From NCBI RefSeq assembly GCF_002113885.1, contig NW_018404083.1, positions 69,102 to 133,101 on the forward strand: a stretch of 64,000 nt of DNA. Reading direction: 5' to 3'. Every line of letters begins with the position of its first letter. Within the stretch, counting starts at the first letter, position 1. The DNA comes from Mizuhopecten yessoensis. Taxonomy: Eukaryota. This document shows, one piece after another, positions 16,585 to 64,000 of this stretch. Position numbers and translations under genes: made by a program. Below the pieces are notes generated by a model. It was not told the origin of the DNA and made no database searches. It was given only the letters and a program-made list of their open reading frames with translations.

Positions 16585-19500
16585 ATGGACAGAGTGGCGT
16601 TCTACGGTGTCTTAATAGCGTCTTTATATTATGCAGGTAAATGACAAGTCGTTAGCATTGGTTTATTATTTTGTTTATTTTCCTTGTTTTGTTTTTGTTT
16701 ATTTATTTCAAAAAGTATTTCATTTTGGTAGCCATTTGTATAATTCAATTGATCACGCATGAATTTTATATTTACGTTAACTATGCAATGTTTATTTAAT
16801 ATTTGTTTATATCAAAAAATTGAATTTATTAATGCAGATATGTATATTTCATTGAAGAGTATTTGAAGAAATAAACATCTGAATATACTTTATAACATTA
16901 CATGTAGATAACTTCTGTTAGTCTTGAAAATACATCCTTGATGAATGTCCGTTAAATATGCATTGAAAAAACCGACCAATTTTGGGGTTTTAGGGTAAAG
17001 ACAACACGATACTAATGAAACTGTTGATATATTATTTTTACATGTATAGTGGTTGCTATGGTAATGATACATGTATATGGTTGCCATACTATTGATACAT
17101 GTTTATGGTTGCTATGATGCTGATACATGTATGTGGTTGCCATGATACTGATACATGTCTATGGTTGATATGCTATTGATACATGTGTATGGTTGCTAGG
17201 ATACTGGTACATGCGTATCGTTGCTATGCTAGTGATACATGTATATTTCTTATGATTTTGAAACATTATATAGTTATGTTGGCTATGTTAACCTGTATGT
17301 GGTTGCTATGAAATTGATACATGTGTATGGTTGCTATGATACTGACAAACCTGGTAGGAAAATTTAACTGTTTCGAAAAATCCTTCATATTTCATTTAGC
17401 TAAATACTTCTTGAAAATCACGTATCTGAATTTTTTACTAAAAATAATAACAACGTACCAATTAATCATAAGAAATCACCGAATTATGCAAGTTTAAATA
17501 TTATGGAAAGTGTCTGAAGAAATTGACATCTACCTAACCGAGGCCCACTTGTATAAAACATATCAAAGTTAAGGAAAATCTCAAGCAATATATTGTCTAT
17601 GGGAAATCTTAGACTTGAGGAAATCTCAAGAATTGAGATGTTTTTATACAAGTGGGCCCGAGCTTTTATAAAGTATTTAGAAATATATGCCCATTTTATT
17701 TGCCTTAACCAAACCTGAAAAGAGTCTACCATTGGTGCATAGCAAAAGTTAAAGCTTATTACTTTTATTGAACAGACGCCACTATCAATTGTGGAACATG
17801 CCTTCAGCCACCAGATTACGTCAGCAGTTTCATCAAACTTAAAGCACAGTCAACCCAATCAGAGGCCATCATTCTACACAACATCGCAGAGGTGCCAATC
17901 AAGGTCGATGTTCAGGTTAAACCAATAAGCGGCAACGACACAAATTACTTCTTCCCTGGATTAGGATCCTCTCAGCAGGATGACGACAAACAAGGAGTCT
18001 ATGGAGGCGTGGTCTACAAGTATAACGAAACAGCTGTCAAACTGTATGTGCCCAACCGGAACGACGGTTCTGGTGATGGTTCCGTGATATTTACAGGTAA
18101 ATTGTTGTTCTTGTATTCTTGTAACTATGGAAACCGATCACGGCCAGATTTTCATTTGCAAAGGATTGACCTCCTTGTTTCAAGGCAGTGAAAATACCTA
18201 AACCATCATCACAAATACATAATATTTTCAATTTACACTGACATTCACTCAATAACCATTGTTCCCGCAATCTTGAATTAGAATCGCATACACTTACCAT
18301 AGAACACAAATTTTCATGACGTAAACAATAATTCGTGTGGGCGGAGTTATGCAGATATTAAGCTGTCACAATAGTGTGACGTCACCAACAGTAGATGTGG
18401 GCGGAGATAGCCAAAGATTATGCACAATTTGGTTGTTGCGAAAATGAAATTTGAAATAGAAAAGAAAAAAGAAAACTATCCCTGAAGTGAAAATTGCCCC
18501 TGAACATAAAATAACTTTACATTATGACATGTCTTGACATTAGGACTAAGATTTAACTGGCAAACTGCGATAATGTTTATTTCAACCGGCCTCAAAACTT
18601 TACTTAGCATCAATTGTAGGTTATTTCAGTCGCACATTTATTGTCAATGTTTCCATTCATAGAGTTGCAGTAAACATTCGATTTAGAACACACAATTGAG
18701 AATTAAATCCTTCATCCGCACAAAATGTATAAGATAGATAGCAAATGCTTGGAATATCATGTCAGTGTATAAACACACAAAACAATAGGTGTATGACTTT
18801 AGGCTCTCTATATGACTGGTTGTATAAATGTTACAGGTATTATGTTGAAATTAATCTCCTTTCTTCCTATTTTCGTGTAACATCTAGAGGAGATGTTACT
18901 ACTGGTTAAGCACTTAACTTTTGACAGGTTACAATAATGCATGGGTTGGACCAAAGGTACAGAAAGAGGACGCGGCTGAGGTACGAGTAAGGGTGTGGAC
19001 TGCATGTAAATTTCCAACTCCGGATTATGAGTCTAACTGGATTCCTATGAAAATAAAGAACGGTTAGTATAGTTTAATCCATGTGCAGCTTCGAACGTGA
19101 CAACTGGTGATCTGGGTCAAGTTGTTCCAAGGGTGATTAGCTTAATCAGTGATTAGTGCAAATTTCAACTTTTATGTATTTTTGAAATGCAGCAATCAAC
19201 CTAGTTCAAACTTTTCAGATATAAAGTATTAAGTAGAGTGAATGTACATGTAAATTTACGAGTTTTTACCGTGTATATTGTAGAAAGGTTGAAAGATGTC
19301 GTTAAACAGTGATTAAGCTAATCATCTTTTGAACAACTGGGCCCTGGTAATATACATCCTCGATATCGATGGGGTTTAGCTCACTTTCGCTCTCTACACC
19401 CCTGGAATATGTCATAGCAAAATTGAAGGCTCAATGTGCAGCCTCTTGTGGATGAGACGAGAAGACTAGTTTGTTCCTTTGATGTACATCAAAAGAATCT

Positions 19501-22500
19501 CGTGGTCGCGTAACTGTAAAAAAATGACTGGCTTTGAAGTCAGGCGTCGCTCCTTTGTAATCTTCAAAGGACAGGTATCAGACTAGTTTTTTTACCTGAC
19601 ACCAATCAAATAGCTAGCTGCGTACCTTCATTTTTGGTAAGACATATTCCAGGGGTGTAGAGAGCGGAAGTGAGCGTTACCCCTGGATATCGAGGATGAT
19701 AATATACAACGTTAAGTTATCAGAGCTTTTACATGCAGATTAATGGATTTTGAAGAATTCAAATTATTTTCTGATCAAGTTTGAACATTTATTCTTCAAA
19801 AATGTATCTTCTACCAGAATATCTGATTTTTTTTCTGTACAGTCTTATACCATACGAAAGGAATGCATTGGTTCTCTTCTCGTTAGAATGTTTTTTATGA
19901 GAGGCGAACCGAGTTTTTGACCTTTTGTATGAGCATAACAAACGGCAAAGGCGAATTAAAGATAAATGTATCGATATTTTTTTTAAATAACAAGAAATGT
20001 AGTGACCATGTCGACCGTTTATACCCTCTTGAACTACAGACCTTTCTAAATCAGATGCTTTAAAGCCTGACCAACAGGACAAACGTTTTACAAAACTGTA
20101 GAATAAGGCAGTTGATTCGATATTTACGGAATTGTTTTTTATCGCAATTTTCATGAAGCATGTCTAAAGCTGGTGGACACGACAAAATGTTATAACAATA
20201 CAGGATTTGAAGACACATAGGTTGACGGAAAACTTTTGTTATATGATCGATATCATGATCTCATTAAGTAATATTTTATTTGCATTGAATATCGATGTTT
20301 TCGTTTAAGCTCATATAGGTTTTCCATGTTGTTTCGTTATCACTACTGCGGTTTTCTCTATTGTCAACTTAGATTACATATATTAATGTCAGTTAATGGC
20401 ATTGATGTATTAGGGGACGCTTGCCATTCTGGAACACATGGTCTTAACCTTGTATTTTTACAATGGTCGTCGAAGTTAAGTTTAAATTACTGTTTTGTAT
20501 ACAGTTCGGTATTTTCTCTTATTATTATTTTTATCAACTTTTGATAGGTACGGACTCGTTTCGGGAGGTAGTTCACGGACTAGGCTACGTCCCTAATTAT
20601 GTAACAGTACAAGTATGGAACAATGGAACTGACTGGTATGCAGACGGAATAGGTATGTTTGATAGAGCAACAAATTAAGTATATAGCAGAAACAGAATAT
20701 CTATGAATGAGGGGGGAGAAACAGAAATCAATTTGATTCAATCTGTACAGTTTCGTACAAATCAATTTAAACCCACCTTTACATATGGATTTTGATTATT
20801 TTTCCTTTTTAATATATATGTAAATATATCAAACATAAAAAAAAAAAATGTCAATGTTTCTTCACTTTATAGAAGTATATTTCAAATAAGAGTTTGAGAA
20901 ATTATATCATCAGGATGATTATTGGTAAATATTTACAAAATTGTTATAATTTTCTAACAGAGAGTAACAAAATATGTATTTGAAGTAAATAAAGATATCG
21001 TTTTTTTTTAAACAAATCATAAATTAAATGAAACAAAATATAATTGAAAAAAGAATAGAAAATATTTAAAAACGCAACAGTTATCCAATATTTTCCCTAC
21101 AAAGTTCCTTCAAAGTAAATCCGCAAGTCTTGTTCTTGTCATATCATAACTAATTGAACTGCCAATTTTACTCCATTTAGCATCAGGAATGACGCCGAAC
21201 AACGTCAACAAACTTACATCCTGGGGAGGAGTTGTCTATGCCTTTGATGACAATCATGTCCGGATCTGGGTACCAGGTTTCGACACAGGTACTCTAAATC
21301 AAATTATCGTAGCTGTAGCAAATCTACTAAATAAGATATTGTTGATGATGATAGTTTTAACGAAAGTCGAAGATGGCAGAAATGTCATCCTGATATATTT
21401 TCAAAATCAATTGTTTTGCTTTTTACTTGAACTGCATGAGTGTTAAAACATACCAATGAAAAGGAATTAAAGTGACTATAACGAATGATAACAATTCTTG
21501 CTCTTTTGTTATTATTATTTTGATAATGGCGTTGATATTTATTCCAACCTTAGTTTTGCATTCATAATAACAAAAGAGCAAGAACTGTTATTATTCTATA
21601 TGGTGACTTTAAAATTCCTTTTTACTAGTATGTTTTAACACTTTAGATTCTTAACATTAATCTTAACATTAAGGTTCCCTGTACCACTGCCAAACATTGT
21701 ACACCTTTTACCAGCATGACTATAGGATTTGATTATGCAAGAATCATTAAGCAGAACAAAAGATTAGTCTGAGGGTGAACATGCAGAGGAACCAAACATG
21801 AATCGAAGTCCAATCATGAGATAGGTTTATTTAGTCAAATGCACTGGTTTGAGTGGAGTTCGGGCGAGGAAAATCTTTTTTTTTTGGTGCATATATATAT
21901 AGAAAAGGTAATTACAATATCAAACTCGTAAATGCATTTGAGTGACTAGGTCAGCGGTAGTACCACGGTATTTCAACTTTATCACATTGGCACAAAACAG
22001 GGTTCTCACACTTGAGCTGACCGAAAATATAAGGCTTATTCAAGTTTTTTTCTAGGCCAGAAGACAAATTTCAATGTCATTTTCCAACACTCAACACCAG
22101 GAGTCATATATGTCGTATAAATAACGTGAAGGAGTCGCTCGTATGGGCAATGATTTTCTTGTCATTCTGGGTCAGGTTGACGTCGTCACATATCGTTTGA
22201 TAAATTCTCTGCACCTCTCCTGCTTCCAGTCAGGAATGAGTTAAACTCTGGACATGCCAGTATTAATATTGATTCTACCTGTGTACTACATTTATTATAA
22301 AAACAACTTAAGAGGAGTTTTTAAAAACTACAATACAGTTCCTTAGTATTTTGCCTGCAGTTTAACAGGGATCCTTAAACATGTATCCCAAGCATCTACT
22401 CAATGTTTAGCTATTTCAATCTATTAATAACTGAATACTTCTGTCATGTATCACAGGAAGTATGTTTAGTGTGGCCGATGGTTGGGGTCAAGGGTCACAA

Positions 22501-34478: not shown

Positions 34479-36124
34479 CATCCACCCAAAAATCACTCTG
34501 AAGGTGATATTGCTTGAAAGAGACAGCAGTCTGCAGACCTACTTAGTGTACAAATAATCTCTAATCATTTAATATAAATATATGTGTGTGTGGGTGGGTG
34601 TTTTGTCCCTTTCGTTGTTGGATCGGAAATGTATGGACTGATTTTGTTCACCGTTCGTAGCTATAAAACTCGTCTTAATATTTCTGAAGAACACACTTTT
34701 TTTATAAAAAAAAAGGAAAAGCAGTCCATATTTTGGTCGTTTTGTCATTTTTGTCAACGACAAACACAAATCAGCTGAACTTTGAAGTTTAAAATGAACT
34801 CTCACGTGTTCCATTTAATATATTCGTGTTAATGATCATGTAATCACATATAGCTAATACAAATGGACTAGAAGATATAGAGCATCACTTCATTGATGCT
34901 TCATTGATGTTGCAACACATACAATGTAACACAATCAACACAAAATCAAAGGTTAAAGTCATCTTCTAGAACACGTTTCAACAATGTCCGCCCTTAAGTC
35001 CTATACCTTATACTTTGCTCACAGCAACATTTTTCTTAATCGTGCACATTAAAATCATTGGAATATTTGATCTTTTGGGAAACGTTAGAGCGGTTTTAAG
35101 TTCAATAACTCGCTGACAGACACAAACCTCCAAAAGAACTTGAGGATTTTTACCATCCGCCGAAATATAATTTCGGATGCAAATACTGCATTCATTTTGC
35201 CCATTTTAACTCTCGCAATAAGTTATAAACTCCATGTTTGCCTAGTGTTAATTTCGCTCTTCGAATGTAATTTCTATTTATAGCAATCTGTGTACTTATA
35301 TTTGCTGTCGTGACAATTCGCCCCCAATACCAAAGACAAAAGTTAAACGGCACTGAGCGGCAAACATTTCCGTGTAAGATTTGTTTTCTTTATTCATGAA
35401 AATATATACATATCATATGTGTCAGAACGTTTTAAGTTCGACAAGTCCCTTTTCAAGCTTTGTCTGACAATTTGACGAAGGGATGGGTCGATACGTTCGT
35501 TGTTTGTGTATATATTACAGTAATTCCCCAGTATAAGTTTCAATCATGGTGGTCAATTCAGTTTTCAATTGTCCTTGCTGCGTCAACTTGGTCATTTAAC
35601 GAATCAATACAAGACACAATGGAACATGACATTAAATGTTTGAATACTCCGAGAGATGAAATTGTTCCCACAAAACAGTCCAATTTGGATATGTTTTCCT
35701 CGGGTAGGACCTGCCCCCGTTGAAACCCTGTTAAAGTACCGTACATATCTGTACTCTGCTTCCCGGACTGTGCTAAAATCGGTGGGTTATACAAATTTAA
35801 ATTTAAATTATATTTTATTAACTAATACTGATTAAAACGCATCAAATAATAAACGTTATCTGTCTGCATTCATTTCAAAATCAATATTTGTATGTATATT
35901 GCAGTGTTTGTTTCAGATGAATGTCTACATTTTACTGCACACGTGTTACATACATTCGGCTGTCCTACCGAAACCCCGTTGTATCGCCACCCCGTTATAC
36001 CGCCAAAATTGGCACAACACAAAATGTGGCAGTATAACGGATGACTAAGAACTGTATATATTCAAGATTTCCCTGTTTACAATATACGTTGAAAGTCACA
36101 CTTTCACAAATATGATTGCAAATA

Positions 36125-39100
36125 TCATAACTTTGACTTCTTGTCGTCAATGTTCATCACAGTCCTAGGATATAAATCCTTCTTCATTATCTCAAGCATA
36201 TCTCGGTCAATCCCAGTGCGTCCTAAAGCCCCGATCGCCAGTCGCTTAGCAGCGCCCATAAGGGTAGGTAACTCTCCAATCTCGTCCACCAGACCGAGGC
36301 TCTTTGCTTCTGGGCCTGGAATTGATCGAGCAAACAGGACTGCCTCTCTGACTGCGTTGGTATTCTTCATTTTATTACTATTGAAAAATAAAATAAGAAT
36401 AAGAAAATAAATATGCTCTTTTACTTCTATTCGTATAAGGTATCTGTTAAAATTATATCTTTCATGGTTCTATAACGACAGATTTGTTTTTTCCTCTGTC
36501 GGATAATTCAAAACGTTCAATGCAGGCTAGTGTGTGTGTTAAAATGTAGCATATAACCTCAATATTAAAATTAAACCTAAAGTATGGTATTGTCACCGAA
36601 AACCTCAACCTCGATCCTTATAAGTCATACTTAAATACCCCAATTAAACATCGTTAGATATTTAATTTTGATATTTTGAACTTGTACTTAGTAATTATTG
36701 GTTTGAAGCTCGTATGCTTATCCGTAAAAGAGAAATGTAGGCCTGTGTGACTTAGGTATATAAATGAACTTAAAACAGGTAGCTGGTCAAAGTGGTGGCT
36801 GGCCTTCAAAGGGAAGCTTAAGCTGTCACAATGATGGGAAGAAATGTTTATACAGTGTTAAACCAATCAGATCGAGGTATGCTGGTATTTCTTGTACAAA
36901 AGGAGACTAGGAAGGACAAAGAGCTGCATCGAAGCCTCCTATAGCCAATTTGGGTATTTGCATGTACGGGTGTTGCATGAGCATCACCAGAAAACAACGA
37001 AACCAAAGCCACGTCCGACAACAAAGCCCTGATTTGGATCTCGACCTCCACCCCTACGGAGTCCAACTGTTAGTGAATTATCTGAGGAAGAAGGTAGCAG
37101 TGAGGAGGAATGAGATAGTTGGGTGACGGTGCCTCCAGTAGAGCGGACTGTGATCGACGATGTTACAGACGTTAAAGAGCCATGAAAGAGGCTACGGAAG
37201 AACCTTCGGTGGGGTAAGTCCCCTACCGAAAAGGAAGGATCTCTGGATGGAAGGAAAAAGGATGACGACACTGCCTGACATCAATAGAAATGAGAAATTT
37301 ACAGATCATTAGGCTCTGACAGACTTTACTTTCGAAGTGCAGAGAGGTGACAGCGGTCATTTTGTTGGACATGGAGGAAGTTAGCCTGCCTGACAACGCC
37401 AAGCAATAAAGCATTTTCTCCGAAATAGATAGATGTTGTAAAATATCTGCTGGAAAATATAGGATATGTTGCATCTTCAATAATGGTAGGGTAGATAGTT
37501 CTATGCTTAGTGGTAATTCAAGTGATTCTGTCTAATTATAGCTTCAATTAACATTAGCGGTTGAAGTGTCATACCACCATGTTAACTTGCCCCCTTGATT
37601 GACCCTTACCTGTTGCAAGGACGAAAACCCATGAAAACAAACATTGTTTGATAAGGGTCTAGTTCGATATATCTAACATGTCGCGTTTTTTAGCCAATCA
37701 AAATTCACGTTAGATTCGTTGCGTTACTAAATATGAAATAGTATAAAAGCGATTTTAGTTTAACAACCAAGTTGAAAATTATACATATATTTATTTGAAT
37801 ATTTACCTTAGGACCTCCCGAGTAGCCGCTGGTATGCGTAGTCCGACCCGAGTCTCATTCATAGAAAACCAGCCTCGCTTTGAATTCATCACTATGTAGT
37901 CGTGTGTAATAGCCAAAAAGGCACCTCCGGCAAATGCATGCCCTTAAAAGATAGTGATTGATAATGAAAAGCCGTAACACATGCAAAAACTAATTAAACA
38001 TGGCGAGGTTGATTTTTAGTTGGGTTTATTTTATTTATCAACTTTTAACCAATGTACAAAGAGCGAAAAATGTCAAGCAAGAAACAAAACACTTAATCCT
38101 TCATTCTGGTAAGAGATTAAAAAAATATTCTTTCTTTTTAATTTTTTTTTTTTTTCAATTTTTCGCATTAACCGGAAAATATGTGAAACAGACAAAATAT
38201 AAATCAACAAGAGTGTTCTGAGAGTAAATTTTCAGATGGGCTAGACCGGGATTCGAACCCAGGACTACAGATTGTTATACAATTGATCTAACCGATTGAG
38301 CTACCTGATCAAAATGAGGTGTCCTCGCAAAAATGTGCTTAACGAAGTTAAAGGGAGGTAACTGTATATATAGGAAAAGCCACACTGCAATGTGACAGGT
38401 ATCCTTAAATTTGAACACAATAATCCATATATCAACCAGAACATGACTGCAGCTTGACGGTCGTATCGGATTCCGTTTCGATGGGTTACAATAGACTGAA
38501 AACGAAAGTTATAGCTGTGCAGCAAACAGGTCATTCATTTCCCGCCATTACTCACCATTTAGAAGTGCCACTGTCGGAAGGGGAAAGTGAGTCATTCTCC
38601 ATAACAAACTCTCGATTTCGGACCGGAAGTGGAGGTGTACCTCTTTTGACTGCTTCATCAACCATTTTAAATCTACCCCATTGCTGTAGAATTTACCTTC
38701 GCCAGTTGTTATCAAAGCCTTGCAGCTCTTATTTCTGGAATGTTTAATCAAATTATCTAATTCTATTTGAACCAAGCTATGTGCATACAAAGTTTACCAT
38801 CTATCATAACCTGAAAATTGTATGTTGTTTTTTTACAGTATTTGTTTTTTTTAGGGGTTTGTTTAAATGAAAAAGAAAATGATTTGTTACTGATATCACA
38901 GAAAATAATAACAAAATTACTGATAATAAAATCGGCACCCTGCGGTAGCCTTTTCCGTCTTTGCGTATTGCAGAGTTATCTTCTCTTGGGAACAGGTATT
39001 GATTGTTACGTCATTAGTCTGTGTGAGAAAATACGTCGTTTTCTCAAAAATTGATGACGTTTCTCTCACAAAAAAAGTGATGTAACAATCAATACCTGCT

Positions 39101-40257
39101 CCCAAGAGAAGATAACTCTGCAATACGCAAAGACGGAATACATTATGAATGCGTAATACCGATTGTATTGGTAATCGTTATGAAATTTGTGGTATATCTA
39201 ATAATATTATAATAATTCGAGATTATCAATACCGCTTTATCACAACCTTATTCGTAAGTCGTCTGAAAGCAGTTTACAAATTATTATCTGTGGTTATGCG
39301 GCATTTGCAAACCAGCCAATATCTTTCTCAACTTATTGGGGAGCATACAACCGGTGCTGCCATTTAGGCGCTCACAGCTAGCATTCAACAATTCCAGCAC
39401 TGCCCAACCACGTACTTTTTTACAGCTGACTTGACTTGAACAAGCGGAATAAAGTATCTTGTTCAAAGATACAACACGGTGCCGTGACTCGAACCCGCAA
39501 CCCCTCGGTCACGAGCCCGGCGTCCTACCTCTTGACTACCGTGCATCTTAAATGGCAAAAATAGCCCAATTGAAAGGGTTTGATCCGTTAAAACTTTTAA
39601 TAACTATACCTGACCATCCGCAATGAATAGAAATTCAATAATACACTTGAGGGTTTTTTATGCGCATGCCAATGTATATTTGCTTACATGTTAAAGATTA
39701 TCTTAAATATTTCTTTTTTAAACTTTGTGTAGACTAGTTACTAAAATATTATCAAAACAAATACTGAAATATTTGTTCCGACATGTTTTACCTTAGCTCA
39801 GCATGATACAATGATACAATCCCCGCAAGAAAATATACAGCACATGCCATTTGATTAAAGTTTTAACACACTCCGAACCATGTATGTCATGTCTTAGAAC
39901 AATCTACATGTATATTAAATAGTTCTGGTGTCAAGGATGATGAAAATAAGTATTATATTAAAGGTGAAATTATTTGCTATCAATTTTGTTTATAAATGAA
40001 AGCGTCAATACGTAGTATTCGAGTAAGTTAACATGAAACATAGGTTTTCGTTTAGATCGGTTATATATACAATTACATGGATCAAGTATGTAGGAGTTAC
40101 CTCCCCTTATTCGCACTCTTGCTCACCTGAGAACCTTGTCGAGATTATCATTGAGAATCTCTAGAAATTCCGCGTTCAAGCGATTCTCTCCATTTTTCAT
40201 CGTGAGAATGGCAAATCCATCGTCAGTAAACTCTACAGAGACTTTGTTCGACGACAT
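36125..40257 (-). CDS. Enoyl-CoA delta isomerase / crotonase-family protein, peroxisomal (paralog B, ~232 aa)
   Basis: Exons 40257-40127 (MSSNKVSVEFTDDGFAILTMKNGENRLN...), 38734-38556 (ALITTGEGKFYSNGVDL...PTVALLNG), 37942-37807 (HAFAGGAFLAITHDY...MNE) and 36377-36125 (...KKSKL*). Internal exon sizes 179 and 136 are identical to paralog A. The C-terminal -SKL is a PTS1. Confidence 0.9.
38238..38408 (-). mobile_element. End fragment of the Kolobok-like element with intact Pol III A/B boxes
   Basis: The minus strand reads TTAA-GGATACCTGTCACATTGCAGTGTG ... GGTAGCTCAATCGGTTAG...GGGTTCGAATCCCGGTCTAGCCC. Confidence 0.65.
38953..39138. mobile_element. Palindromic MITE family A, copy 3
   Basis: Same TIR and internal sequence as 2628-2812. 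Confidence 0.9.
39300..39545 (-). mobile_element. tRNA-derived SINE fragment
   Basis: The minus strand reads GGTAGTCAAGAGGTAGGACGCCGGGCTCGTGACCGAGGGGTTGCGGGTTCGAGTCACGG (A and B boxes), followed by TCCTTG-like SINE body sequence. Confidence 0.55.
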
Positions 40258-41762: not shown

Positions 41763-41845
41763 CCCTTTCACCACTGTAGACTATAATGGACTTGTCAAAA
41801 TAAATGTACGGCAGAGTCTACTAAAGTTACCAAGGGGTGAAAGGG
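41763..41845. mobile_element. Tiny piggyBac-like MITE
   Basis: TTTA-CCCTTTCACC ... GGTGAAAGGG-TTAA, i.e. CCC/GGG termini with a (degenerate) TTAA target. Confidence 0.55.
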
Positions 41846-42252
41846 TTAATGAGAAGTTCACTTGCAATACAGACTTACTGTAGACAGAGTCGCGTCATAC
41901 CGGGAATATACGAAAAGTCACTTAATCAGATTTTAATTAAGTTAATTTTTACTTCCGATCCTCCGTATATCACTGTTTTAGTTGTGCAAATGATGATGCA
42001 AGTCCCACCTTATAAGGTAAAAATATGTAAAGATAACTAAAAAATTAAGCTTAATTCGTATTTGAATTTATTGTAAAAAAACCATAACATTATCACAGTA
42101 CATTTGTATTTCACTAATGCAGAAGCATTGAATCTTCAGTTGTTTTGGATGTGTAGCAATCCGCTTGCCAATATTTCTTGAAAGATATAAGATGATTGAA
42201 AATGTTAAACAATGTCACAATGGCAAATGAAAGTCCAATGTAAAGATTGTAC

Positions 42253-45200
42253 TCAACAGCCGGCTTGATCAGCTTTCAAAAAGTGATTTGTATCAATTTT
42301 GAAACTCTTGAAGACGTCCATCAGCTCATCAATCTTGGCCTGAGGAAGAGATCGTTCCCTAGACATGATCCAGGCCTGCTCGAGATGGCTGAGTCCGAGG
42401 ATATCAATACATGAGTAAATGAGTGTATAGGAGGTATAATCTGTCTTCAGGACCCAGTAGTTTCCGTAAGGTGTGTCTGTTGAGAAACGGAGAAATTGTG
42501 TTTTATTAGTCCGTGTTGTTTTACCATCTTTATGAAACATAAAGTAAAAATGTTATATTCACTTTTTATATCGATTTTTCAGGGTTCGAACTATCAGAGT
42601 TTTATTTACTAAGATAAAGAAGAGACTTGGCCGGGACCGGAGAAATACTTCGAGATAAACGGTGTCTTTCAGTTAAAAGAGTTCGAGATAACGAGGTTCG
42701 ACTGTATTTGATATGATTTTTCTACGCTCGATTATTTTGAATCCTTCAATCTGCATGTTGTTTTTTTATTTTTATTTCATGTTATTGAAAATATGCCATT
42801 TACAAATAATGACGTAAAGTGTTGTTGAAAACATATATGAAAACATATATTTATCACAAGATGTCAATAAACATGTCCGGAATTGTACTTGTCGACAGTT
42901 GACACGAATACATTTGATATTAATTTCTGTCTAGTATATTGTTGTGAATATTTCCTTTTCTTCTTCTGTAAACTAATTTTACTGCCATAAAATATGTTTA
43001 TCGTGATTTCAATGGCGATGATCATATTGAATTCAAATTTGTTTCCGCGGGGTTCTTATTTTCGCGTTTTACATATTTCTTGGTAGTTAAATACTCCTTC
43101 AAACGAGTTGATGTCAAATCAGACAAACTGATATGCTTCTGCTTTCTATTTGAAAAACACTAAAGATCAAATTTATTTATCTTATCGGTTATTTTAGTGA
43201 GTAAACATGACGTATCAGGATCTATAACTGGAAGTCAGTTGTAATTGAAAAGAAACAAATGAAATGGATGATTGACGTGTATGTTAATTACTTACGGGCT
43301 GCGAATCTGATCTTGAGTTTGGAGGGAGAGTTCTGGGGGTCATTCTGATAAGCGTCACCAATAGCTATTGAGGGTTTGCCTGTTTTGGGGCTACAACAGA
43401 AAAAATATTAATGAAACCATCTGATAATCTTATTATATTTCCATTTTCAAATGGAGTCATATTATGTTCTAAACCCAAAAGTGGGTAGTGATGGTGCATG
43501 TACCAGAGGCTGGATTGAAATTTCCGTGCGGAAGGATGTGAGTGTTTCCAAATCGTTAAAGAAAGAAAAACATAAGAAATTCAGTTATCTTTCTCCTTTT
43601 CTAAAATCGTTAATAGCAAACTCATTTTCTTATCTCGTTTCTATTTTACTGCGACAGAAAATTGTATATTAAAACTTGTACTGCCTTCTGTTGCGGTTAT
43701 TCTGTTGACACGTAATGATGTTGATCATGGTATTTATGTACTCACTCAAAGCCCTCGTTGTGAACGTAGATGTGGTTGTTGGCTTGAAGGGTATAGTTGG
43801 CGGTGATGCACCTCTGTCCCTTCTCGTAGCTAGTCGGGAATCGGTAAAGTTCATACCAAATTCCGAGGTACTGCAAGGAACGAAGTCATTATTAGCAAAA
43901 GTTCAAAGTAAACGCAAACGTATTGTTAACACATAGTGATTTAAGCACTAGATGGTCATTAGTACTGTGAGTGTGCAGTTAGTCTAAGCACGTTATTTCT
44001 CAGCAGGCACGCGACCAAAATTCAATAGGTTGAAGTTTAGTCGATCACCGTCCGAGTTGAAAAATTGCTGTTGTTTCAATTGTTAAAGAAGTGTTGTTTA
44101 TCTACTATATATAAAGAGAAAGTTCTTTGTAAGCATACAATTTTTGTACGTACGAGTTAAAAATCTCTTTTGGAACGTTTGTCGAATTGTAATATACATT
44201 TATTTGACCGAGGATTAGGGGGGTGATGGTGTTGCCCGACCCAAAAAATATTTTATCGGCTTTAAACGATTTTTATAAGACGGTACAATTCGTAATGCTG
44301 TACAGAATATTGGCTCAGATTGTTAATCTGTATCATTAAACCAATCTAAACATTTGTATTTTTATTTCAAATTCGACCGTCTTATAAAAATCGTTTAAAG
44401 CCGATAACATATTTTTTTTGTGTCGGGCAACATCAGTTCCCCCTAATCCTCGGTCAAATAAATGTATATTGCAATTCGACAAACGTTCCAAAAGAGATTT
44501 TAACTCGTATGTACAAAAATGGTATGCTTACAAAGAACTTTCTCTTTATAAATAGTAGAGCTGATTGCACATAATCGAATTAGTAAGTGCCAGTTGGCTG
44601 CTACTGAAATCTGAACTGTTTGACTTGTACAGACTACGGTCATATCAAAAAGATAACTGTTTAATACACAGTAGCGTTTTCTTTTTCAATTTCATGTACG
44701 TAAAACTTTGTTAAGCTTTTGGTAAGATAGATTCAAGGACTAAAGCTAGCATTGAAGTCCATCGCGAACAAAGACAGCGTCCATGATAACTTCAGGCCCG
44801 AAGTCTGGTTTAGTATTTTAAAGGTCGACTTCAGGACTGAAGCTATCACGGAAGCACGAAAGTGGCAAGTCCATTGATCGTAAGAAACCATATTATAAAA
44901 TGTACATAAATATATATATTTGTATAATTAAGACTTGTTTATTTCTCGGTCAATCGAATCGTCCTAAGAAAGCACGATAAATCCTATTAACAAAGTGCAT
45001 TTTGAAAATAAATATCGTTGGAACCTTGATCGCAAAAACATAACCACGAAAATAAGCGGTTTACATCGAATCCAATTTTAAAACAAAAGTACCAATGAAA
45101 AAGATATAAATTAGAGTTTAATGCGTTTATTAAGGAACAACCGCGAAATATGTATTCCTGAGATTCATGAAAATTAGGAGATGCACAGTCAGTCAAATTA

Positions 45201-45661
45201 AAATAAAAGATAATAATAAAATATATTTTGAATCTATGTCTAGTCAAATATATCTGCAAATGTAAACACAACTTTTAACAAATGCTAAAGAACATTACTC
45301 ATTGTAGATTTTTGCTCGGGCTGCTTTCTTTTGTCTCGTTTCGGAAATTTGTATAAAAGCAAGACATTTTTTCTTTAGTGAGGCAACGGAGGGCGGGAGC
45401 CTGATAGTTCTCTACAGTATTTTTTTTATTTAGATTTTAATTGGAATAGTTTTAGAAATCAGTGTTTCAATTTGAACTTTGATAGGTCAATTATCTAGTG
45501 AACATTATCTAGCTGTTCTATAGAACTGCACCGTTATAAAGACATACCTGGCTGAGATCAAAGCTTTGCTGCGTGGTTGCAGATGGGCATCCTCCGAAAC
45601 TGAAAGACTGTGCTGAGGTCAGGGCAATAGCCGCCGCTAGAAGTAAAGCTTGTCCGATCAT
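42253..45661 (-). CDS. APOD: Apolipoprotein D-like lipocalin (paralog 1, ~185 aa, secreted)
   Basis: Exons 45661-45548 (signal peptide + QSFSFGGCP..QSFDLSQ), 43870-43746 (YLGIWYE, lipocalin SCR1; RCITANY), 43390-43296 (..KLKIRFAA) and 42476-42253 (YWVLKTDYTSY, SCR2; AWIMSRER, SCR3; DQAGC*). Four Cys lie in the ApoD pattern. Confidence 0.92.
44101..44559. mobile_element. Fold-back element: ~185-bp inverted arms around a ~90-bp spacer
   Basis: 44101-44284 is the near-exact reverse complement of 44376-44559. Both termini read TCTACTAT(A/T)TATAAAGAGAAAG. Confidence 0.85.
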
Positions 45662-45734
45662 TGTCGTATTGATGATGTCGTGTTGGTCAGTTCCTGTGAA
45701 AGTCTGCACACTTTTCATAGCGTTCCCACCCGCC

Positions 45735-45903
45735 TTATATAGGCAGTTGGGAACTCCGGATTCACATGTTTCGGAGCGTGTTTCAAAATGGAAACTATAC
45801 AGGTCAAGTTATGAAACATTTTCTTCGGAGTATTGACCATAAACATCCATGTTCACATTCCAGAGTTGTGAAGGACAACGCTTGGACTTGGTCTGATAAG
45901 GTC
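45735..45903 (-). promoter_or_regulatory. ApoD-1 promoter: TATA box and motifs conserved with the ApoD-2 promoter
   Basis: On the minus strand: TATATAA 45741-45735, AATGTTTCATAACTT 45820-45806, CACAACTCTGGAAT 45870-45857 and GACCTTATCAG 45903-45893. Confidence 0.7.
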
Positions 45904-47549
45904 AAAGAGATATGTTTGACCGACAGTCTTTACAAGGCCCTCCGTCTCGGGCATGTGCAATAAGCATGTTAGGGTCATGAAATATTCCTTGACTAAATTG
46001 ATGTTATAATAGCTGAAGAATACCCGTACTTCTGTTAAAACAGTAACTATCAATTGGAAACACTTTTATACCGGCATGGCATTACCTTAGAGAGACAGTT
46101 GCGGAACTTGATAATGATAAGTATGAAGTAAAAATGGTAAAGCAATCAACGGCAGTGTTCTGAGAGAATAAAGCAACGGACACAAAACGGGACTCGAACC
46201 CAGGACCTCCGATCACAATTATTTCGCTCTTATCAATTGACCGGATCAGAGGTAGTTTCCTAGCCCTTTTTCTATTACAGTTGAAATATCTTGCAATGAT
46301 CAAGGATGAACTTCGAATCTACATTTGATAGTATCATGGAAAATTTGATACATTGTAAAACTAACACCACTAAACCCATGTAAAAATGACACTGAGTTTT
46401 GTATGAAATGATTGCAAAAAATATCTCCCTAAGTGAAAAGAAATAAATCATGATAATATTGTATTCAGTATTTGAGCCTTGGTGCAATGTGCAATTTGTT
46501 TCTTGTAAAAAAAAGGTTGTTGATTTGTTTTAAGCTAAACAAAATCCTGTATTTCGCTCAAGTGACAGTTTTTAAATGTTATTTACATATCAATACCAAT
46601 GAATTCACAGTAGACTTTTAGATGTTCGTAAATGAAATGATTAGTTCATACATACATATTGTTGTCCTAATCTAAACAGCATGCAAACCACTAGAGAATC
46701 ATAATGCATAGTTGCATTGTTTGGGCGTTGTGTAGGACCACTACCTGTTTATATCATGGTCGAGCTTTATTGTAAAATAAACTTTGTAACTTTGCTTTTA
46801 CTATTATATTAAAATGGACAATTCTTCATAACACAAAGAAACACGTGAAATGCAAACTGATATGAAATTGAATTCGTTTGTAACAGTCATGTTTATCCAC
46901 ACTCCACCTCGCCAGACAAACTCGACACCGTTCGTACCGCTGGCCTTGTGGTTGACCTTCACTATGGATAGGACTGAAAGATAGGGCTCAAACAACCCTC
47001 CACACATACCGTGGTTGTGAGGGTGCATGTTTGGGAAGTAGCCAATTAAGTACCTATGTCCTTAGATGGGAGTACAGTAAGTACACTTTACACCCATAAT
47101 ATAGCCGAGGATGGCCGTGGCCTTGTACCTGGAATTCATCCAGGCGTAGTTTATATGACATTTTTTTATAGGCAACTTACATCTCTGTTGTATTCTTCTA
47201 TATATTTCGGAATACATTTGACAAAGATTTTTATTCTTTTAGCCTTAAGTATCACTGATGAGTTTAAATAGAGGAAGTAGCCATTTGGTGCAGTCAATAT
47301 TTACCCTATTTGACTTTCTGCATCAGCAATTTATCTATCTTAATACGTTCTTTTCGATATTTTTGGTGGGTTTTTTTTGTGATTGTCATTGTCTTTGGCA
47401 TTTCTTACTAAACTGAAATGCGAAGAAACGTTTGCAATTCCTATGCAAGCTAAGTAGTTTAATTGTGTTGTAATGTAATTATTTACCAACATAAACGATA
47501 AACGATATACAGGCTGAGTATGTTTAGCATGAAAATAATTAACATGGGT

Positions 47550-47759
47550 ACTGTAAAATCAGATATTTTCGTGGGGACCAAATTTCGTGCTTTACCGAAA
47601 AGAACACCATTTCGTTGGTACATGAATTCGTGGAATACGAGAACAACCTCCAACGGAGAAAAGCTTATAATTACTTCATGGACCAATGAATTAGTGGATG
47701 AATGTTACCCACGAAATCGACGAAATTAAAAACCCTACGAAAATGACTAATTTTACAGT
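47550..47759. mobile_element. TA-flanked Tc1/mariner-type MITE
   Basis: TACTGTAAAATCAGATATTTTCGTGGGG ... CCCTACGAAAATGACTAATTTTACAGT. A related copy is at ~54710-54935. Confidence 0.65.
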
Positions 47760-61100: not shown

Positions 61101-63535
61101 TCCTTGTACACCAAATCTGGTTACTCCAGATGAAATAGTATAGAAGATATGACCTGGACAAACTTTTTCGAAAGTTAAGATCAAAGGTCAAAGCATAGGT
61201 CACAGTGAGGTCATATGACCTTTTTCTTGCACTCCGCCATCCCAAAAGATGTCCTGGTACATCAAATCTGGTTACTCCAGGTGAAATAGTGTAGACGGAC
61301 AGAGGGACGGAAGAACGGACGGAATGCAAACTTAACCCCCCATCCCCCCATTCCCATCCCCCCTTGGGAACTGTTTGGGGACTTATATAGAAAAAAATAC
61401 TACTGAAATATGTTTAGTTTTATATCAAACATCGTGCATTTCGAAACTAGTTTTTATACATACATCTTCCCACGTAGGGTTCCCAAAAGCGAACTGTCAT
61501 ACTGGCGTTTTTAGATTTCTGAGACATCAAACCTCCTCCCCAGTTTTGGTTGATGTATATCAAATATCCTTCAGCATGGTTCAAGTGTTGCCATACGTGA
61601 ATTACTCTGGGACCATATGAGTACACTAGTCCACCAAAAGATTCTGTCGGGTCGGCGTTCTGTACAGCTCCCATTCCCGGGAAGGAAAAACCATCGTTAT
61701 TACCATCGATAGCTTTCACCTGTTTATTTTGTATAAGAAACAACAAATAAAGTTCTGTCATATTCATCTCTTCTTCAGGTTTATGACTAGGATTTAATAC
61801 GTTCTGAAGATATTGTGTCCATAGTTTGATTATTCAATTTTTAGTATAGCATTTAAAACCATTGATAAAAAATTAGAAGCATTAATGCTGACAAACTTTA
61901 CAACGTAAATATTGTAAACAGCAACTGTATTTTCGTCTCCTTTTAACTGATTTTAGATTTCAGGAGTTTATCTGCAATAAGATTGCCATTCTTTGCGATT
62001 TCTTAATTAAAATTTTGAGAAAAAAAATATAAACATAGTAACAAACAATATATTAATATTATTTATTTTGAAAGTAGGTAAAATACAAACTGTCAACAGG
62101 ATGGCGGGGACTAAACCATGGGTCGATTTCAACAATGATGAAAGAGAAGGAATTACATCTCTAAGTATATATAATCACCATACTACTATTTTTAAAATGA
62201 AAGTTTTGTCAAATTTCCAAGATGACATCATGCTAAATACATTTACATTAAAACTATCTCTACAAAATAAGACTACAAAATACTAACGGTAACGTAAATC
62301 ATCCCAGTGTCAATGTCCAAGGAGTTCCCACTTCGTGTTGATAAGTGATGCGAACGCTTTTTTCTTATAGTATTTACCAAAGATTTAGTGTCGCTGTATA
62401 TGGCGTCACCTTTAAAATAACTCCACACCCTAACTCTTATGGACCCCTCATTCCAAACTTCCTTTGACCCACGACCCCATCCATCGGCTGTGCTGAATAG
62501 GCTTCCTAAAAAATAGTTAATAATTTTTATTGTTAAAATCAAATGACTAAAATATATCCTGTAAATATCTAATATTGTCTTCTCTGACATGTAAGATGTA
62601 AAATCATGATGAATTTTCAATATCTTAGCTACAAAATCTGAATATCGGTGTCCTGTGTTATATGCTTTGCGAATGATATAAACTTGTGGAAATACTTAAA
62701 CACACATCTCCTTATAAAATTTTATTCTGAATTTTAATGACGTCATGATACTTACAGTTTCAGAGGGATATCTTCAACGGCTGACACTTCGATTGTATCT
62801 TAAGTTTTTCATCGCTTGTGAATACGATGTGATAACGAAAAATAATTTCAAACAATACCAAACATTAACATAAGTTTAACAATTTTGCTCGAAATAATGC
62901 AAGATTGTCATCAGACGTCAATTTTCATTTTTGTTGTCGCATCCATGATCGCAGCCGCATTCGGATGTCATAGTAATGATTAGGACGGCATATTTCATGA
63001 GACAACTTTTTTTCGCAGTCTCTAATTTTTCAAGGATTTCCTCTAATGGTTAATTTCGCGGGAAACCACTTTTAGCGGATATCATGTTTAGTGACATCAA
63101 TAAACAAAGAAAAACAAAATACCGCAGAAATCGTAAAAAAATAGAAAACAACGAGTAAACTTATTTTACAGTAAAATACGTCTCTGGATTAGCTACTAAT
63201 GATAAATAGGCGAATACCAGTCACCTAGACTAATTTGGTAGTCATAAGTTTTGAAGAGCGTATTTACCTGAAGTTTTGTTATATTAAAAACCTGTTTGTT
63301 TTCTTTATAAATTGTCTAACATCAGCTCGTGCGGTGATGCGTGTAAGACATGCAAATTATTTTATAAAAAAAACACCGCCCTAAAATCTGACAGCAAATC
63401 AATTATGGTAAGACATATATAACTTACCTGAGTCGTAGCCAGGAACCCATATTCTAACGTGACTATCATTGAACCCGTAAATAACACCTCCCCATGCCGA
63501 CTGCTGATCAAGTGCTTGAACTGTCATTACTGATC
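55165..63535 (-). CDS. Paralog of the GGVVY-repeat type-I membrane protein (5' exons lie beyond the window end)
   Basis: Exons 63535-63428 (WGGVIYGFNDSHVRIWVPG), 62505-62288 (LFSTADGWGRG..IRVRVW), 61719-61464 (FGGLVYSY..WGGG..VRFW), stalk exons 60511-60434, 59583-59524, 57987-57904 and 57535-57497, and TM exon 56976-56873 (VLGIIIGACLIVAGGIATGIICALCKKNKR). The last exon 55218-55165 (ESNPGRQISYQQLFCLQ*) is tentative. Intron positions and phases match gene 2. Confidence 0.82.
55911..56094. mobile_element. Palindromic MITE family A, copy 4
   Basis: Same TIR and internal sequence as 2628-2812. Confidence 0.9.
58355..58890 (-). mobile_element. tRNA-derived SINE with (AAAC)n tail
   Basis: On the minus strand: GTTGAGCGTTCGCCCC..GGGTTCTGTCCCCTGGCCGAGACATACCAAAGTC head, GTCAGTATAATGTGACCGG central block, and GGACGTTAAAC + (AAAC)n tail. 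A second copy is at 11706-12050. Confidence 0.8.
60875..61385 (+). mobile_element. pearl/CvA/HINE (Helentron-derived)-like non-autonomous element
   Basis: Internal tandem core repeats (CAAATCTGGTTACTCCAGGTGAAATAGT x3, AAGGTCA motifs), an ACGG microsatellite near 61295-61322 and a short 3' palindrome CCCC..GGGG. This is the layout known for bivalve pearl-type elements. Confidence 0.6.
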
Positions 63536-64000
63536 CTGTAAGTAATAAATTAAAATCAGTTCTTAAGTTATTTAATCCAACAATTTCATGTCCGCCAAGA
63601 GATTAAACACTATTGCACATCCGAGCAATAGTTATTTTTAATACTGCAACATTTTCGTCTAATTATGTTTTCCCTCTTTCTCGGAAAAATACAGTTTTGC
63701 CCGATGTTTTTATTTCGCCCTTTACATGAAATTACTTTATTTGGTATGTCGTTCACTAAAAATTCCATCTCATGACAAATTGGCCCATATTGCTATGGGT
63801 GAAAAAACAGGCTGAAATTAAGCTGAGGAGAAGATGTTTAGTATAACGTAGTAGACTCAACATTTCAGGTGACACCTCGCAAAGCAGATTTAAGCGTTGT
63901 TCTATTATCATTTTTCAAAACTATATGCTTTGAATACATAGTTTAAGTTAGAAATTAACTAACTAAGCATAAGTGCGTTATCATAAGAAGACAAATTAAC

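Follow-up and report, generated by a model that had tools for sequence, protein, structure and literature searches.

A mirror-image cluster of membrane-protein, crotonase and lipocalin genes in scallops, probably born of an old inverted segmental duplication

A gene cluster that reads as its own mirror image

How does a run of neighbouring genes come to be arranged as a mirror image, and does such an arrangement signify joint function or merely shared descent? The question is raised by a stretch of 64,000 nucleotides from the scallop Mizuhopecten yessoensis (C756:69102-133101, hereafter the window, with positions counted from its first nucleotide), in which the genes lie in the order TM1(+), ECI-A(-), ECI-B(-), ApoD1(-), ApoD2(+) and TM2(-). 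The midpoint between the start codons of ApoD1 and ApoD2 falls at 47603. This gene order, the paralog pairs, their conserved introns and a symmetry axis near 47.6 kb had been described in an earlier note, and are confirmed by the exon-level six-frame self-comparison and splice-site modelling from which the present gene models derive. Exon identity between paralogs is 61-85% in the ApoD pair, 50-63% in the ECI pair and 44-57% in the TM pair, and intron positions and phases are the same within a pair (0,2,1 for ApoD; 2,1,2 for ECI). The open reading frames of all four small genes (ECI-A, ECI-B, ApoD1, ApoD2) are complete, both TM genes are collinear with their Argopecten orthologs, and no frame-breaking lesion was found in any modelled copy, just as the earlier reading had it; the TM models leave out the signal-peptide exon of TM2 and parts of both Ser/Thr stalks. 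Judged from these models, all six genes look intact.

The axis lies in the head-to-head intergenic region between the two lipocalin start codons (45662-49545). Within it, 47546-47728 is a dispersed repeat that stands outside the duplication and has 871 first-look candidates genome-wide. The two arms are unequal in length (~31 vs 19 kb), because ECI-B and the later insertion of ECI-A both lie on the TM1 arm, the TM2 arm being free of crotonases.

Could the symmetry be a product of assembly, whether from a misjoin or from a haplotype that was collapsed or duplicated? The assembly is fragmented (82659 contigs), and two gaps of estimated length interrupt the cluster, but both fall within introns of the gene models. 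The first, at 30194-30386 in intron 3 of ECI-A, is flanked by the end of exon 3 at 31484 and the start of exon 4 at 29889, which form a phase-2 junction with a full complement of residues relative to ECI-B and ECI-C. The second, at 50034-50229 in intron 1 of ApoD2, lies between a donor at 49659 and an acceptor at 50761, which join in phase 0 at a residue shared with the corresponding junctions of ApoD1 and the orthologs. Moreover, the paralogous proteins are only 51-72% identical and their synonymous sites are saturated, too divergent for haplotypes. Decisively, the same order recurs in the independent assemblies of three other species, which rules out chance or a misjoin and makes an artefact scarcely credible.

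Conservation among scallops and other bivalves

In Ylistrum, two overlapping loci (L011 and L007) read TM2+, ApoD2-, ApoD1+, ECI-B+, TM1-, the same mirror order, which is found again in Argopecten (CM084265.1, 43.36-43.41 Mb). In Pecten, where only the TM2/lipocalin side is seen, TM2, ApoD2 and ApoD1 lie in matching order. Each TM and each lipocalin copy has its own orthologs in the other scallop genera, with ortholog dS of ~1.0-1.6 among the four genera and dN/dS of ~0.1-0.16, indicating purifying selection on the copies. From the shared layout and these orthologs it follows that both duplications predate the scallop radiation. Microsynteny across molluscs, to which the earlier note had looked for a check, thus holds in part: the linkage is kept in scallop genera, but no lipocalin or crotonase lies within 10 kb of the TM-family genes of two oysters and one mussel.

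The lipocalin pair

ApoD1 (42256-45661, minus strand; exons 45661-45548, 43870-43746, 43390-43296 and 42476-42256) and ApoD2 (49546-52197, plus strand; exons 49546-49659, 50761-50885, 51236-51327 and 51968-52197) encode predicted secreted lipocalins of 185 and 187 amino acids (aa), respectively. Their description as ApoD-type is borne out by profile searches and by matches to solved structures alike. Exon 4 of ApoD1 matches PF00061 (Lipocalin) at 32.6 bits against a cut-off of 23, exon 2 matches PF08212 (Lipocalin_2) at 33.2 bits against 24, and the exons of ApoD2 score 32.0 and 26.4 bits with the lipocalin profiles, again above cut-off. The best solved match to both exons is human ApoD, 2HZQ (exon 4, E 1.6e-12; exon 2, E 7.1e-7), followed by sandercyanin, Blc and crustacyanin. 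With the ApoD-type lipocalins (ApoD, sandercyanin, crustacyanin, insecticyanin, Blc) the scallop proteins share a length of ~185 aa, a signal peptide followed by Cys-Pro, and the G-x-W-Y-E motif. Unlike the known members, they are present as two head-to-head copies with diverged promoters.

The last exons of ApoD1 and ApoD2 are 84% identical, whereas the next lipocalin in the genome reaches 53%, making the two each other's closest paralogs; the ApoD1 orthologs form a clade with 100/100 support. Similarity between the copies ends 8 bp upstream of each ATG. Beyond that point each gene carries its own conserved region: ~240 bp upstream of the ApoD1 ATG (45662-45903, minus strand), ~70% conserved in Argopecten, Ylistrum and Pecten by blastn and likely the 5′UTR and proximal promoter, and ~200 bp upstream of the ApoD2 ATG (49338-49545, plus strand), 66-74% conserved in the three other genera. 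Between themselves, the two promoters have no sequence in common.

The membrane-protein genes

TM1 (16585-26897, plus strand) opens with a signal-peptide exon (ATG at 16585), whose splice is taken from the RefSeq model P0003 (XP_021374252.1). Six ectodomain exons (~17775-18098, 18927-19064, 20547-20651, 21180-21296, 22453-22674 and 23198-23479) encode three 114-aa beta-sandwich domains, here called GGVVY domains, and are followed by exons for a Ser/Thr-rich stalk (~24539-24715 and within 25026-25403), a transmembrane helix (26268-26405) and a tail (26703-26897). The gene is collinear with its 631-aa Argopecten ortholog, P0203, with 73-78% identity in the ectodomain exons. Read directly, its sequence runs from a hydrophobic first exon through three domains and a Ser/Thr stalk to a 23-aa hydrophobic stretch and then a run of Lys, by which TM1 is a predicted type-I membrane protein.

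TM2 lies on the minus strand from 56864 to ~66283. The cluster end originally placed at 63535 thus cut the gene short, as it extends ~2.3 kb past the window end at 64000. Its helix/tail exon (56864-56989), a stalk exon (~60453-60509) and three ectodomain exons (61462-61719, 62285-62506 and 63417-63536) are in the window, and its first three ectodomain exons (~64094-64231, 64788-64958 and 65957-66283) lie beyond. TM2 is collinear with its 520-aa Argopecten ortholog, P0008, over residues 16-415 and 479-520. It has the same type-I layout as TM1 save for the signal-peptide exon, which was not found. All six ectodomain exon junctions of TM1 and TM2 are at the same residues.

The GGVVY domain is covered by no Pfam family, and a domain profile finds exactly three copies in 123 of the 201 proteins of the family. 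An AF2 model of one 114-aa domain (pLDDT 89.3, pTM 0.83) resembles the C-terminal Ig-like domain of Pseudomonas aeruginosa pseudaminidase (2W38/3H6J, residues 335-438), with a Foldseek E of 1e-4 and, in VIA-align, a Z of 10.9 and an rmsd of 2.9 Å over 101 residues (next match Z 5.7), at a sequence identity of only 18%. That bacterial domain reportedly mediates trimerisation. The scallop family differs from the pseudaminidase in bearing three tandem copies in one chain, a mucin stalk and a transmembrane helix.

In the family tree, TM1 and TM2 form sister clades (support 91/90). A separate clade, TM3, adjoins a crotonase of the same family as the ECI genes. In Pecten and Argopecten the two form a convergent pair (TM3> <crotonase) 3.5-4.1 kb apart, and in Mizuhopecten crotonases of the ECI family lie <15 kb from TM3 copies. 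On the Mizuhopecten contigs concerned (C5088 and C2464), both with large gaps, the orientation is unlike that in Pecten.

The crotonases, and a copy that came from afar

ECI-A (29646-33329, minus strand; exons 33329-33205, 32308-32130, 31619-31484 and 29889-29646) encodes a 228-aa crotonase-fold protein ending in -AKL, and ECI-B (36128-40257, minus strand; exons 40257-40127, 38734-38556, 37942-37807 and 36377-36128) a 232-aa one ending in -SKL. By their sequences both belong to the crotonase superfamily: exon 2 matches Pfam ECH_1 (cut-off 27) at 37.3 bits in ECI-A and 31.8 bits in ECI-B, a match above cut-off that they have in common with ECI1 and the short bacterial crotonases. The term peroxisomal, first attached to these proteins from sequence, stands as a predicted localisation, since the -AKL and -SKL ends are PTS1 signals. 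Such ends recur in the ECI-B orthologs of Ylistrum and Argopecten (-SKL) and in the TM3-adjacent copies of Pecten (-SKL) and Argopecten (-AKL). Unlike animal peroxisomal ECI2, the scallop proteins combine this C-terminus with the lack of an ACBP domain.

Their identity as enoyl-CoA isomerases, also proposed at the outset, is not established. A G-H-A-F-A-G-G oxyanion-hole stretch and an Asn-Glu are present in all copies, the Asn-Glu being invariant in 8 copies. No Glu follows the A-G-G stretch in the ECI copies; set against rat hydratase, this would mean that the hydratase's first catalytic Glu is missing, an isomerase-like pattern. The nearest solved sequences are ~232-aa bacterial crotonases of unproven function (EchA3, 6C7C/3R6H; 3OT6; E 1e-4 to 4e-3). 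Mitochondrial ECI1 (1SG4/1XX4) trails these EchA3-like proteins at E 0.35-0.43, and neither yeast Eci1 nor ECI2 is among the solved-structure matches listed.

In Argopecten and in Ylistrum, where it has 232 aa, the ECI-B ortholog adjoins TM1, which marks ECI-B as the putative ancestral crotonase of the cluster. Its neighbour has another origin. ECI-A had been taken for a tandem duplicate, but its sister is ECI-C (C756:958.8-963.5 kb; support 99/98), on the scaffold that carries the cluster but 860 kb away, and between TM1 and ECI-B no ECI-A is present in Ylistrum or Argopecten. ECI-A and ECI-C differ by a dS of 0.54 (dN 0.18), against an ortholog dS of ~1.0-1.1. On tree, divergence and position together, ECI-A is a young, lineage-specific copy of ECI-C.

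One duplication or several

The mirror arrangement of the four remaining paralogs might have arisen at once or piecemeal. A comparison of dS among the pairs, suggested earlier as the arbiter, founders on saturation in all three old pairs, in which four-fold sites differ by 0.59-0.70. Protein-scaled depths give a relative measure: counted from the scallop crown node as the unit, the duplication node lies at 2.6 for TM (bootstrap 2.2-2.8) and 3.1 for the lipocalins (2.4-4.7), with overlapping ranges, although, with dS saturated, any claim of equal age depends on the lengths of protein branches that evolved at unequal rates (ApoD1 0.38 vs ApoD2 0.17). These overlapping depths fit, short of proof, a single inverted duplication.

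Separate events at different times, a head-to-head lipocalin duplication and an unrelated duplication or inversion of TM, would instead make the symmetry accidental. Raw divergence is indeed unequal (dN 0.19-0.24 in the lipocalin pair, 0.42 in the TM pair), as are the post-duplication branch lengths; the arms differ in crotonase content, and ECI-A shows that the locus accepts later insertions. Once scaled to the ortholog divergence of each family, however, the depths overlap, both duplications precede the split of the same sampled genera, and the orientation of the four genes is exactly that expected if a TM> <ApoD segment was copied once in inverted form. We therefore regard separate origins as unlikely. 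The old inverted duplication of a TM+ApoD unit, as first proposed, fares well on this evidence: TM1 and TM2 are sisters, ApoD1 and ApoD2 are closest paralogs, and every copy has its own orthologs.

As in palindromic segmental duplications, two paralog pairs are mirrored about one axis with exon structure conserved in each. Unlike recognisable palindromes, the scallop cluster has unequal arms and is too old for arm-to-arm likeness in non-coding sequence: none was detected, the nucleotide matches being confined to ApoD exons 1 and 4 and dispersed repeats. This speaks against the inverted-duplication model, yet it is what one would expect of an event that predates the scallop radiation, and so is no disproof.

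A proposed history

Taken together, the cluster probably goes back to an old inverted segmental duplication in the stem lineage of Pectinidae, followed by the loss of a crotonase and the later arrival of ECI-A. In the ancestral block, a GGVVY membrane-protein gene and a peroxisomal crotonase gene would have formed a convergent pair, with an ApoD-type lipocalin gene after them; because the TM3 clade also sits beside a crotonase, this block was probably a TM-crotonase one. Duplication head-to-head at the lipocalin end and loss of the crotonase from the new arm would have yielded TM1> <ECI-B <ApoD1 / ApoD2> <TM2. The insertion of ECI-A, as a copy of ECI-C that landed between TM1 and ECI-B, would have come much later and only in the lineage of Mizuhopecten. 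A search of the TM2 arm left no crotonase relic, so the loss is read from the TM3-crotonase block; that arm probably once had its own copy. Of the two options offered earlier, that a crotonase was duplicated on one arm or lost from it, tandem duplication thus falls away and loss is the better inference.

Does the linkage reflect a functional module?

Alternatively, selection may have kept the genes together as a module, in which the lipocalins deliver a lipid or pigment to the GGVVY membrane proteins, the peroxisomal crotonases process an unsaturated acyl chain, and shared regulation favours linkage. Much in the cluster would suit such a scheme: an order kept in four genera across the ortholog dS given above, TM-crotonase adjacency repeated in the paralogous TM3 block, the settling of ECI-A, as a third crotonase, within the cluster, and every copy intact under purifying selection. 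Yet the TM2 arm manages with no crotonase at all, the 2.7 kb past the crotonase of the TM3 block contain no lipocalin, whereas in the cluster one lies at a distance of 1.5 kb, and the oyster and mussel TM-family genes have neither partner nearby. Furthermore, the ApoD1 and ApoD2 promoters share no sequence, no direct link is known between an enzyme of the peroxisomal matrix and a carrier outside the cell, and a literature search gave no paper. The carrier, receptor and peroxisomal module envisaged earlier is therefore unsupported, given the diverged promoters and the absence of linkage in three non-scallop species, and we consider it quite improbable; the linkage would rather persist by inheritance than through joint action. 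A bolder version, very unlikely in our estimation, would have GGVVY triple-domain membrane proteins and short PTS1 crotonases as an anciently linked bivalve pair that recruited ApoD-type lipocalins in scallops. The cluster would then be a lipid or pigment uptake-and-processing unit held together by shared regulation, with a lipocalin carrier, a receptor with a pseudo-trimeric Ig-like ectodomain, and a crotonase handling an unsaturated acyl in peroxisomes.

Implications

Under the inverted-duplication history, the locus offers a clean, dated inverted segmental duplication whose mirror order has been kept across four scallop genera, and the case of ECI-A illustrates how a later gene insertion can mimic a tandem duplicate. 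The two diverged ApoD-type carriers, with their separate conserved promoters, may be candidates, and only candidates, for lipid or carotenoid transport in scallops. The recurring neighbourhood brings together an uncharacterised metazoan ectodomain family, absent from Pfam and similar in fold to a trimerisation domain of a bacterial sialidase, and a small PTS1 crotonase family, and so provides a concrete, testable lead on the function of both.

The Mirror-Image Gene Cluster

In the scallop Mizuhopecten yessoensis, two GGVVY-domain membrane-protein paralogs (TM1 and TM2) and two lipocalins (ApoD1 and ApoD2) face each other in mirror order, with two crotonases, here kept under their first names ECI-A and ECI-B, lying between TM1 and ApoD1. 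A six-frame, stop-to-stop self-comparison of the window (35% G+C, with two N runs at 30194–30386 and 50034–50229) recovered every exon pair implied by the earlier note. The lipocalin exons at 45.5, 43.8, 43.3, and 42.3 kb on the minus strand pair with those at 49.5, 50.7, 51.3, and 52.0 kb on the plus strand at 62, 61, 71, and 85% identity, respectively; the crotonase exons at 33.3, 32.2, 31.5, and 29.7 kb pair with those at 40.2, 38.6, 37.9, and 36.2 kb, all on the minus strand, at 54, 55, 63, and 51%; and for the membrane proteins, exons at 21.2, 22.5, and 23.2 kb (plus) pair with those at 63.5, 62.4, and 61.6 kb (minus). The lipocalin start codons at 45661 and 49546 have their midpoint at 47603, bearing out the mirror axis that the earlier note had drawn. 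Its end coordinate cuts TM2 short: with flanks from the source assembly (988 Mb, 82659 contigs) added, 20 kb beyond the window end and 10 kb before its start, TM2 runs on to ~66.3 kb, and its six ectodomain exons all align collinearly with those of TM1. Self-comparison, splice models, and other scallop genera together confirm and extend the mirror cluster.

Splice sites were picked by consensus and homology. Junctions and phases are identical within pairs (0, 2, 1 in the lipocalins and 2, 1, 2 in the crotonases), producing complete open reading frames of 185 (ApoD1), 187 (ApoD2), 228 (ECI-A), and 232 aa (ECI-B), lengths that agree with annotated products of other scallops (184/185 and 232 aa). 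TM1 is collinear from signal peptide to C-terminus with its 631-aa Argopecten ortholog, and TM2 likewise follows an ortholog of 520 aa, beginning at residue 16; parts of both low-complexity stalks are left unplaced in the models, as is the short signal exon of TM2. The window locus is also the source of a RefSeq protein, XP_021374252.1 (P0003, LOC110463739). Queries in external searches were single exons or database protein identifiers rather than spliced models. The first N run falls between exons 3 (ending at 31484) and 4 (starting at 29889) of ECI-A, and the second between exons 1 (ending at 49659) and 2 (starting at 50761) of ApoD2. The exons flanking either gap join in the expected phase, with zero residues missing relative to paralogs or orthologs, so the coding inference is unaffected; physical continuity across the gaps is not provable from the sequence itself.

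Several repeats and minor features accompany these genes. Short dispersed repeats of SINE- or MITE-like character occur between the two lipocalin genes and in the surrounding sequence. An inverted match between 47.5 and 54.7 kb was considered as part of the mirror and rejected, being a ~220-bp dispersed repeat (47546–47728 and 54743–54938) with 871 first-look candidates genome-wide at ~75–79% identity. Further dispersed repeats lie at 48670–48961, 52443–52733, 38181–38411, and 7025–7302. Tandem arrays occupy 4096–4734 (31-bp units), 6219–6864 (23-bp), 17039–17345 (28-bp, within TM1 intron 1), and 29212–29521 (37/111-bp, just downstream of ECI-A). Four copies of a ~190-bp palindromic element (2620–2830, 3650–3840, 38950–39140, and 55905–56100), 82–93% identical and each also matching its own reverse complement, probably represent a MITE. 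A candidate gene at 10436–11287 on the plus strand, a single-copy reading frame (283 aa, ATG start, with much acidic low-complexity sequence), has no Pfam match and one weak relative only in the genome.

Conservation Within the Pectinidae

The arrangement recurs in other scallop genera. In Ylistrum balloti (JAUZWB010000660.1), two overlapping loci place TM2(+), ApoD2(−), ApoD1(+), ECI-B(+), and TM1(−) within ~30 kb, each gene assigned individually to its Mizuhopecten ortholog by exon identities. The same five genes follow in unchanged order in Argopecten irradians (CM084265.1, 43.36–43.41 Mb), as do TM2, ApoD2, and ApoD1 on the TM2/lipocalin side of the cluster in Pecten maximus. At first the Argopecten cluster seemed to be split by 4 Mb, a reading that dissolved on closer assignment: protein P0013, at 47.3 Mb, belongs to a third clade, TM3, and the true TM1 ortholog, P0203, sits inside the intact cluster. 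Outside the scallops, the TM-family genes nearest in the oysters Crassostrea virginica and Saccostrea cucullata are same-strand tandem pairs with neither lipocalin nor crotonase found within 10 kb, and none was found within 10 kb of a TM-family gene in the mussel Mytilus edulis. The microsynteny check proposed in the earlier note thus came out in favor of linkage within Pectinidae, with none seen in the 10-kb flanks of these three other species. On the TM2 side, synteny reaches past the cluster: an exon upstream of TM2, ~12.3 kb past the window end (window-scale 76234–76424, minus strand; loci L003/L004), has conserved counterparts in Argopecten (61% over 49 aa) and Ylistrum. On the other side, the MFS gene that lies upstream of Argopecten TM1 was not found in the 26 kb upstream of Mizuhopecten TM1.

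Age and Number of Duplication Events

An inverted duplication of a TM-plus-lipocalin unit, as the earlier note proposed, is supported in outline. TM1 and TM2 form sister clades in the family tree (support 91/90), each containing several genera. ApoD1 and ApoD2 are reciprocal best matches genome-wide, 84% identical in the last exon against 53% for the next lipocalin, and ApoD1 orthologs form one clade (100/100). The suggested comparison of dS was uninformative, since the ApoD, TM, and ECI-A/B pairs are all saturated (NG86 undefined or >2.6; four-fold sites differing at 0.59–0.70) and orthologs between genera already stand at ~1.0–1.6. Relative depth was used instead, as mean duplication-node depth over mean scallop-crown-node depth, with branch lengths fitted on fixed topologies for the same three species. 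TM gives a ratio of 2.6 (bootstrap 2.2–2.8) and the lipocalins one of 3.1 (2.4–4.7), with clearly unequal rates after duplication; the overlapping intervals are compatible with a single event and do not demonstrate one. No non-coding similarity was found from arm to arm. Gene conversion, considered as a source of the 85% identical lipocalin last exons, is unlikely: at the DNA level these exons agree at just 76%, and orthologs conserve the exon to the same degree.

Taken exon by exon, both lipocalins score above the Pfam cut-offs for Lipocalin and Lipocalin_2. The best solved match of both informative exons is human apolipoprotein D (2HZQ), ahead of sandercyanin, Blc, crustacyanin, and insecticyanin, which marks both products, judged by sequence, as ApoD-type lipocalins, an assignment of type and not of orthology to chordate APOD. 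Around the start codons, nucleotide alignment of the two genes begins no more than 8 bp before the ATG and ends with exon 1. Some 200–240 bp upstream of each ATG are conserved between genera at 66–74%, and each paralog thus appears to keep its own proximal promoter rather than a symmetrical one shared by both.

Origin of the Crotonases

The history of the crotonases differs from the one in the earlier note. The family has five loci genome-wide: ECI-A, ECI-B, a third paralog, ECI-C, outside the window on the same scaffold (C756:958.8–963.5 kb, locus L018), and copies on contigs C2464 and C5088 adjoining TM3-clade genes. Tandem duplication, one of two options in the earlier note, proved wrong: ECI-A is no tandem copy of ECI-B. 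ECI-A is sister to ECI-C (99/98), at dS 0.54 and dN 0.18, the former about half the Mizuhopecten–Ylistrum ortholog synonymous distance, and it was not found between TM1 and ECI-B in Ylistrum or Argopecten. These observations make ECI-A a late arrival in the Mizuhopecten lineage only, with ECI-C as its source or sister. Nucleotide similarity between the two is limited to exons and ~100 bp of 5′ flank. Their last exons share 88.6% of DNA and only 77% of protein sequence, so most differences there are non-synonymous, a hint that selection was relaxed or positive once the copy existed.

A further clue to crotonase history comes from TM3 (proteins P0013, P0176, and P0175), whose genes in Argopecten and Pecten share a chromosome with the cluster but lie apart from it. 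In both species, a crotonase of the ECI family lies 3.5–4.1 kb downstream on the opposite strand, a convergent layout matching TM1 and ECI-B. As TM3 branches outside TM1 plus TM2, the convergent pair is probably older than the inverted duplication. Copying of an unbroken stretch from TM through ApoD would then have carried a crotonase along, to be lost later from the TM2 arm; no crotonase relic was found on that arm at 52.2–56.85 kb. In Mizuhopecten, two gap-rich contigs (C5088:6000–32600 and C2464:22000–45000; loci L012, L013, and L020–L022) each hold a TM3-clade gene and a same-strand crotonase 12–15 kb off, unlike the convergent orientation in Pecten and Argopecten. These copies may be allelic or recently duplicated.

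ECI-A and ECI-B pass Pfam ECH_1. In all eight crotonase copies examined the Asn-Glu is invariant and the oxyanion-hole stretch is retained. By comparison with rat enoyl-CoA hydratase, these copies lack a Glu where the first catalytic residue of that enzyme would fall, an isomerase-like pattern. The closest solved sequences are bacterial proteins of ~232 aa such as 3OT6 and EchA3, and mitochondrial ECI1 matches only at E 0.35–0.43; isomerase identity is therefore plausible but unproven. ECI-A ends in -AKL and ECI-B in -SKL, as relatives in other scallops do, making peroxisomal targeting a fair inference.

The Membrane-Protein Ectodomain

In TM1 and TM2, the ectodomain is built from a 114-aa domain repeated three times in tandem, followed 3′ by Ser/Thr-rich stalk exons, one transmembrane helix, and a short tail. 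Profile comparison found no Pfam family covering this domain. A library of 1.8 billion proteins yielded 165 representative clusters of relatives (E<0.001), with bearers in sponges, cnidarians, hemichordates, and bivalves; exactly three copies are present in 123 of the 201 retrieved proteins with matches. An AlphaFold2 model of one domain, built from a 97-sequence alignment, is confident (pLDDT 89.3, pTM 0.83). As modeled, it matches the C-terminal Ig-like domain of the Pseudomonas aeruginosa pseudaminidase (2W38/3H6J; Foldseek E 1e-4), and VIA-align ranks this match far ahead of the next (Z 10.9, rmsd 2.9 Å over 101 residues; next match Z 5.7). Look-alikes in the ESM Atlas, with scores ≤0.87, were uninformative.

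Function and Significance

No mechanistic link among the lipocalin, crotonase, and membrane-protein products emerged from this analysis, and a literature search found no paper mentioning the cluster genes. The recurrence of TM–crotonase neighbors is a mild hint, as is the third crotonase that joined the cluster. Block duplication and homology-guided rearrangement explain both equally well. Scallop genomes rearrange slowly. A functional module maintained by selection is improbable and amounts to speculation; linkage by neutral inheritance is the likely account. The mirror duplication is well preserved, yet an ordinary kind of genomic event. The most useful by-product is a lead tying an uncharacterized ectodomain family to PTS1 crotonases.
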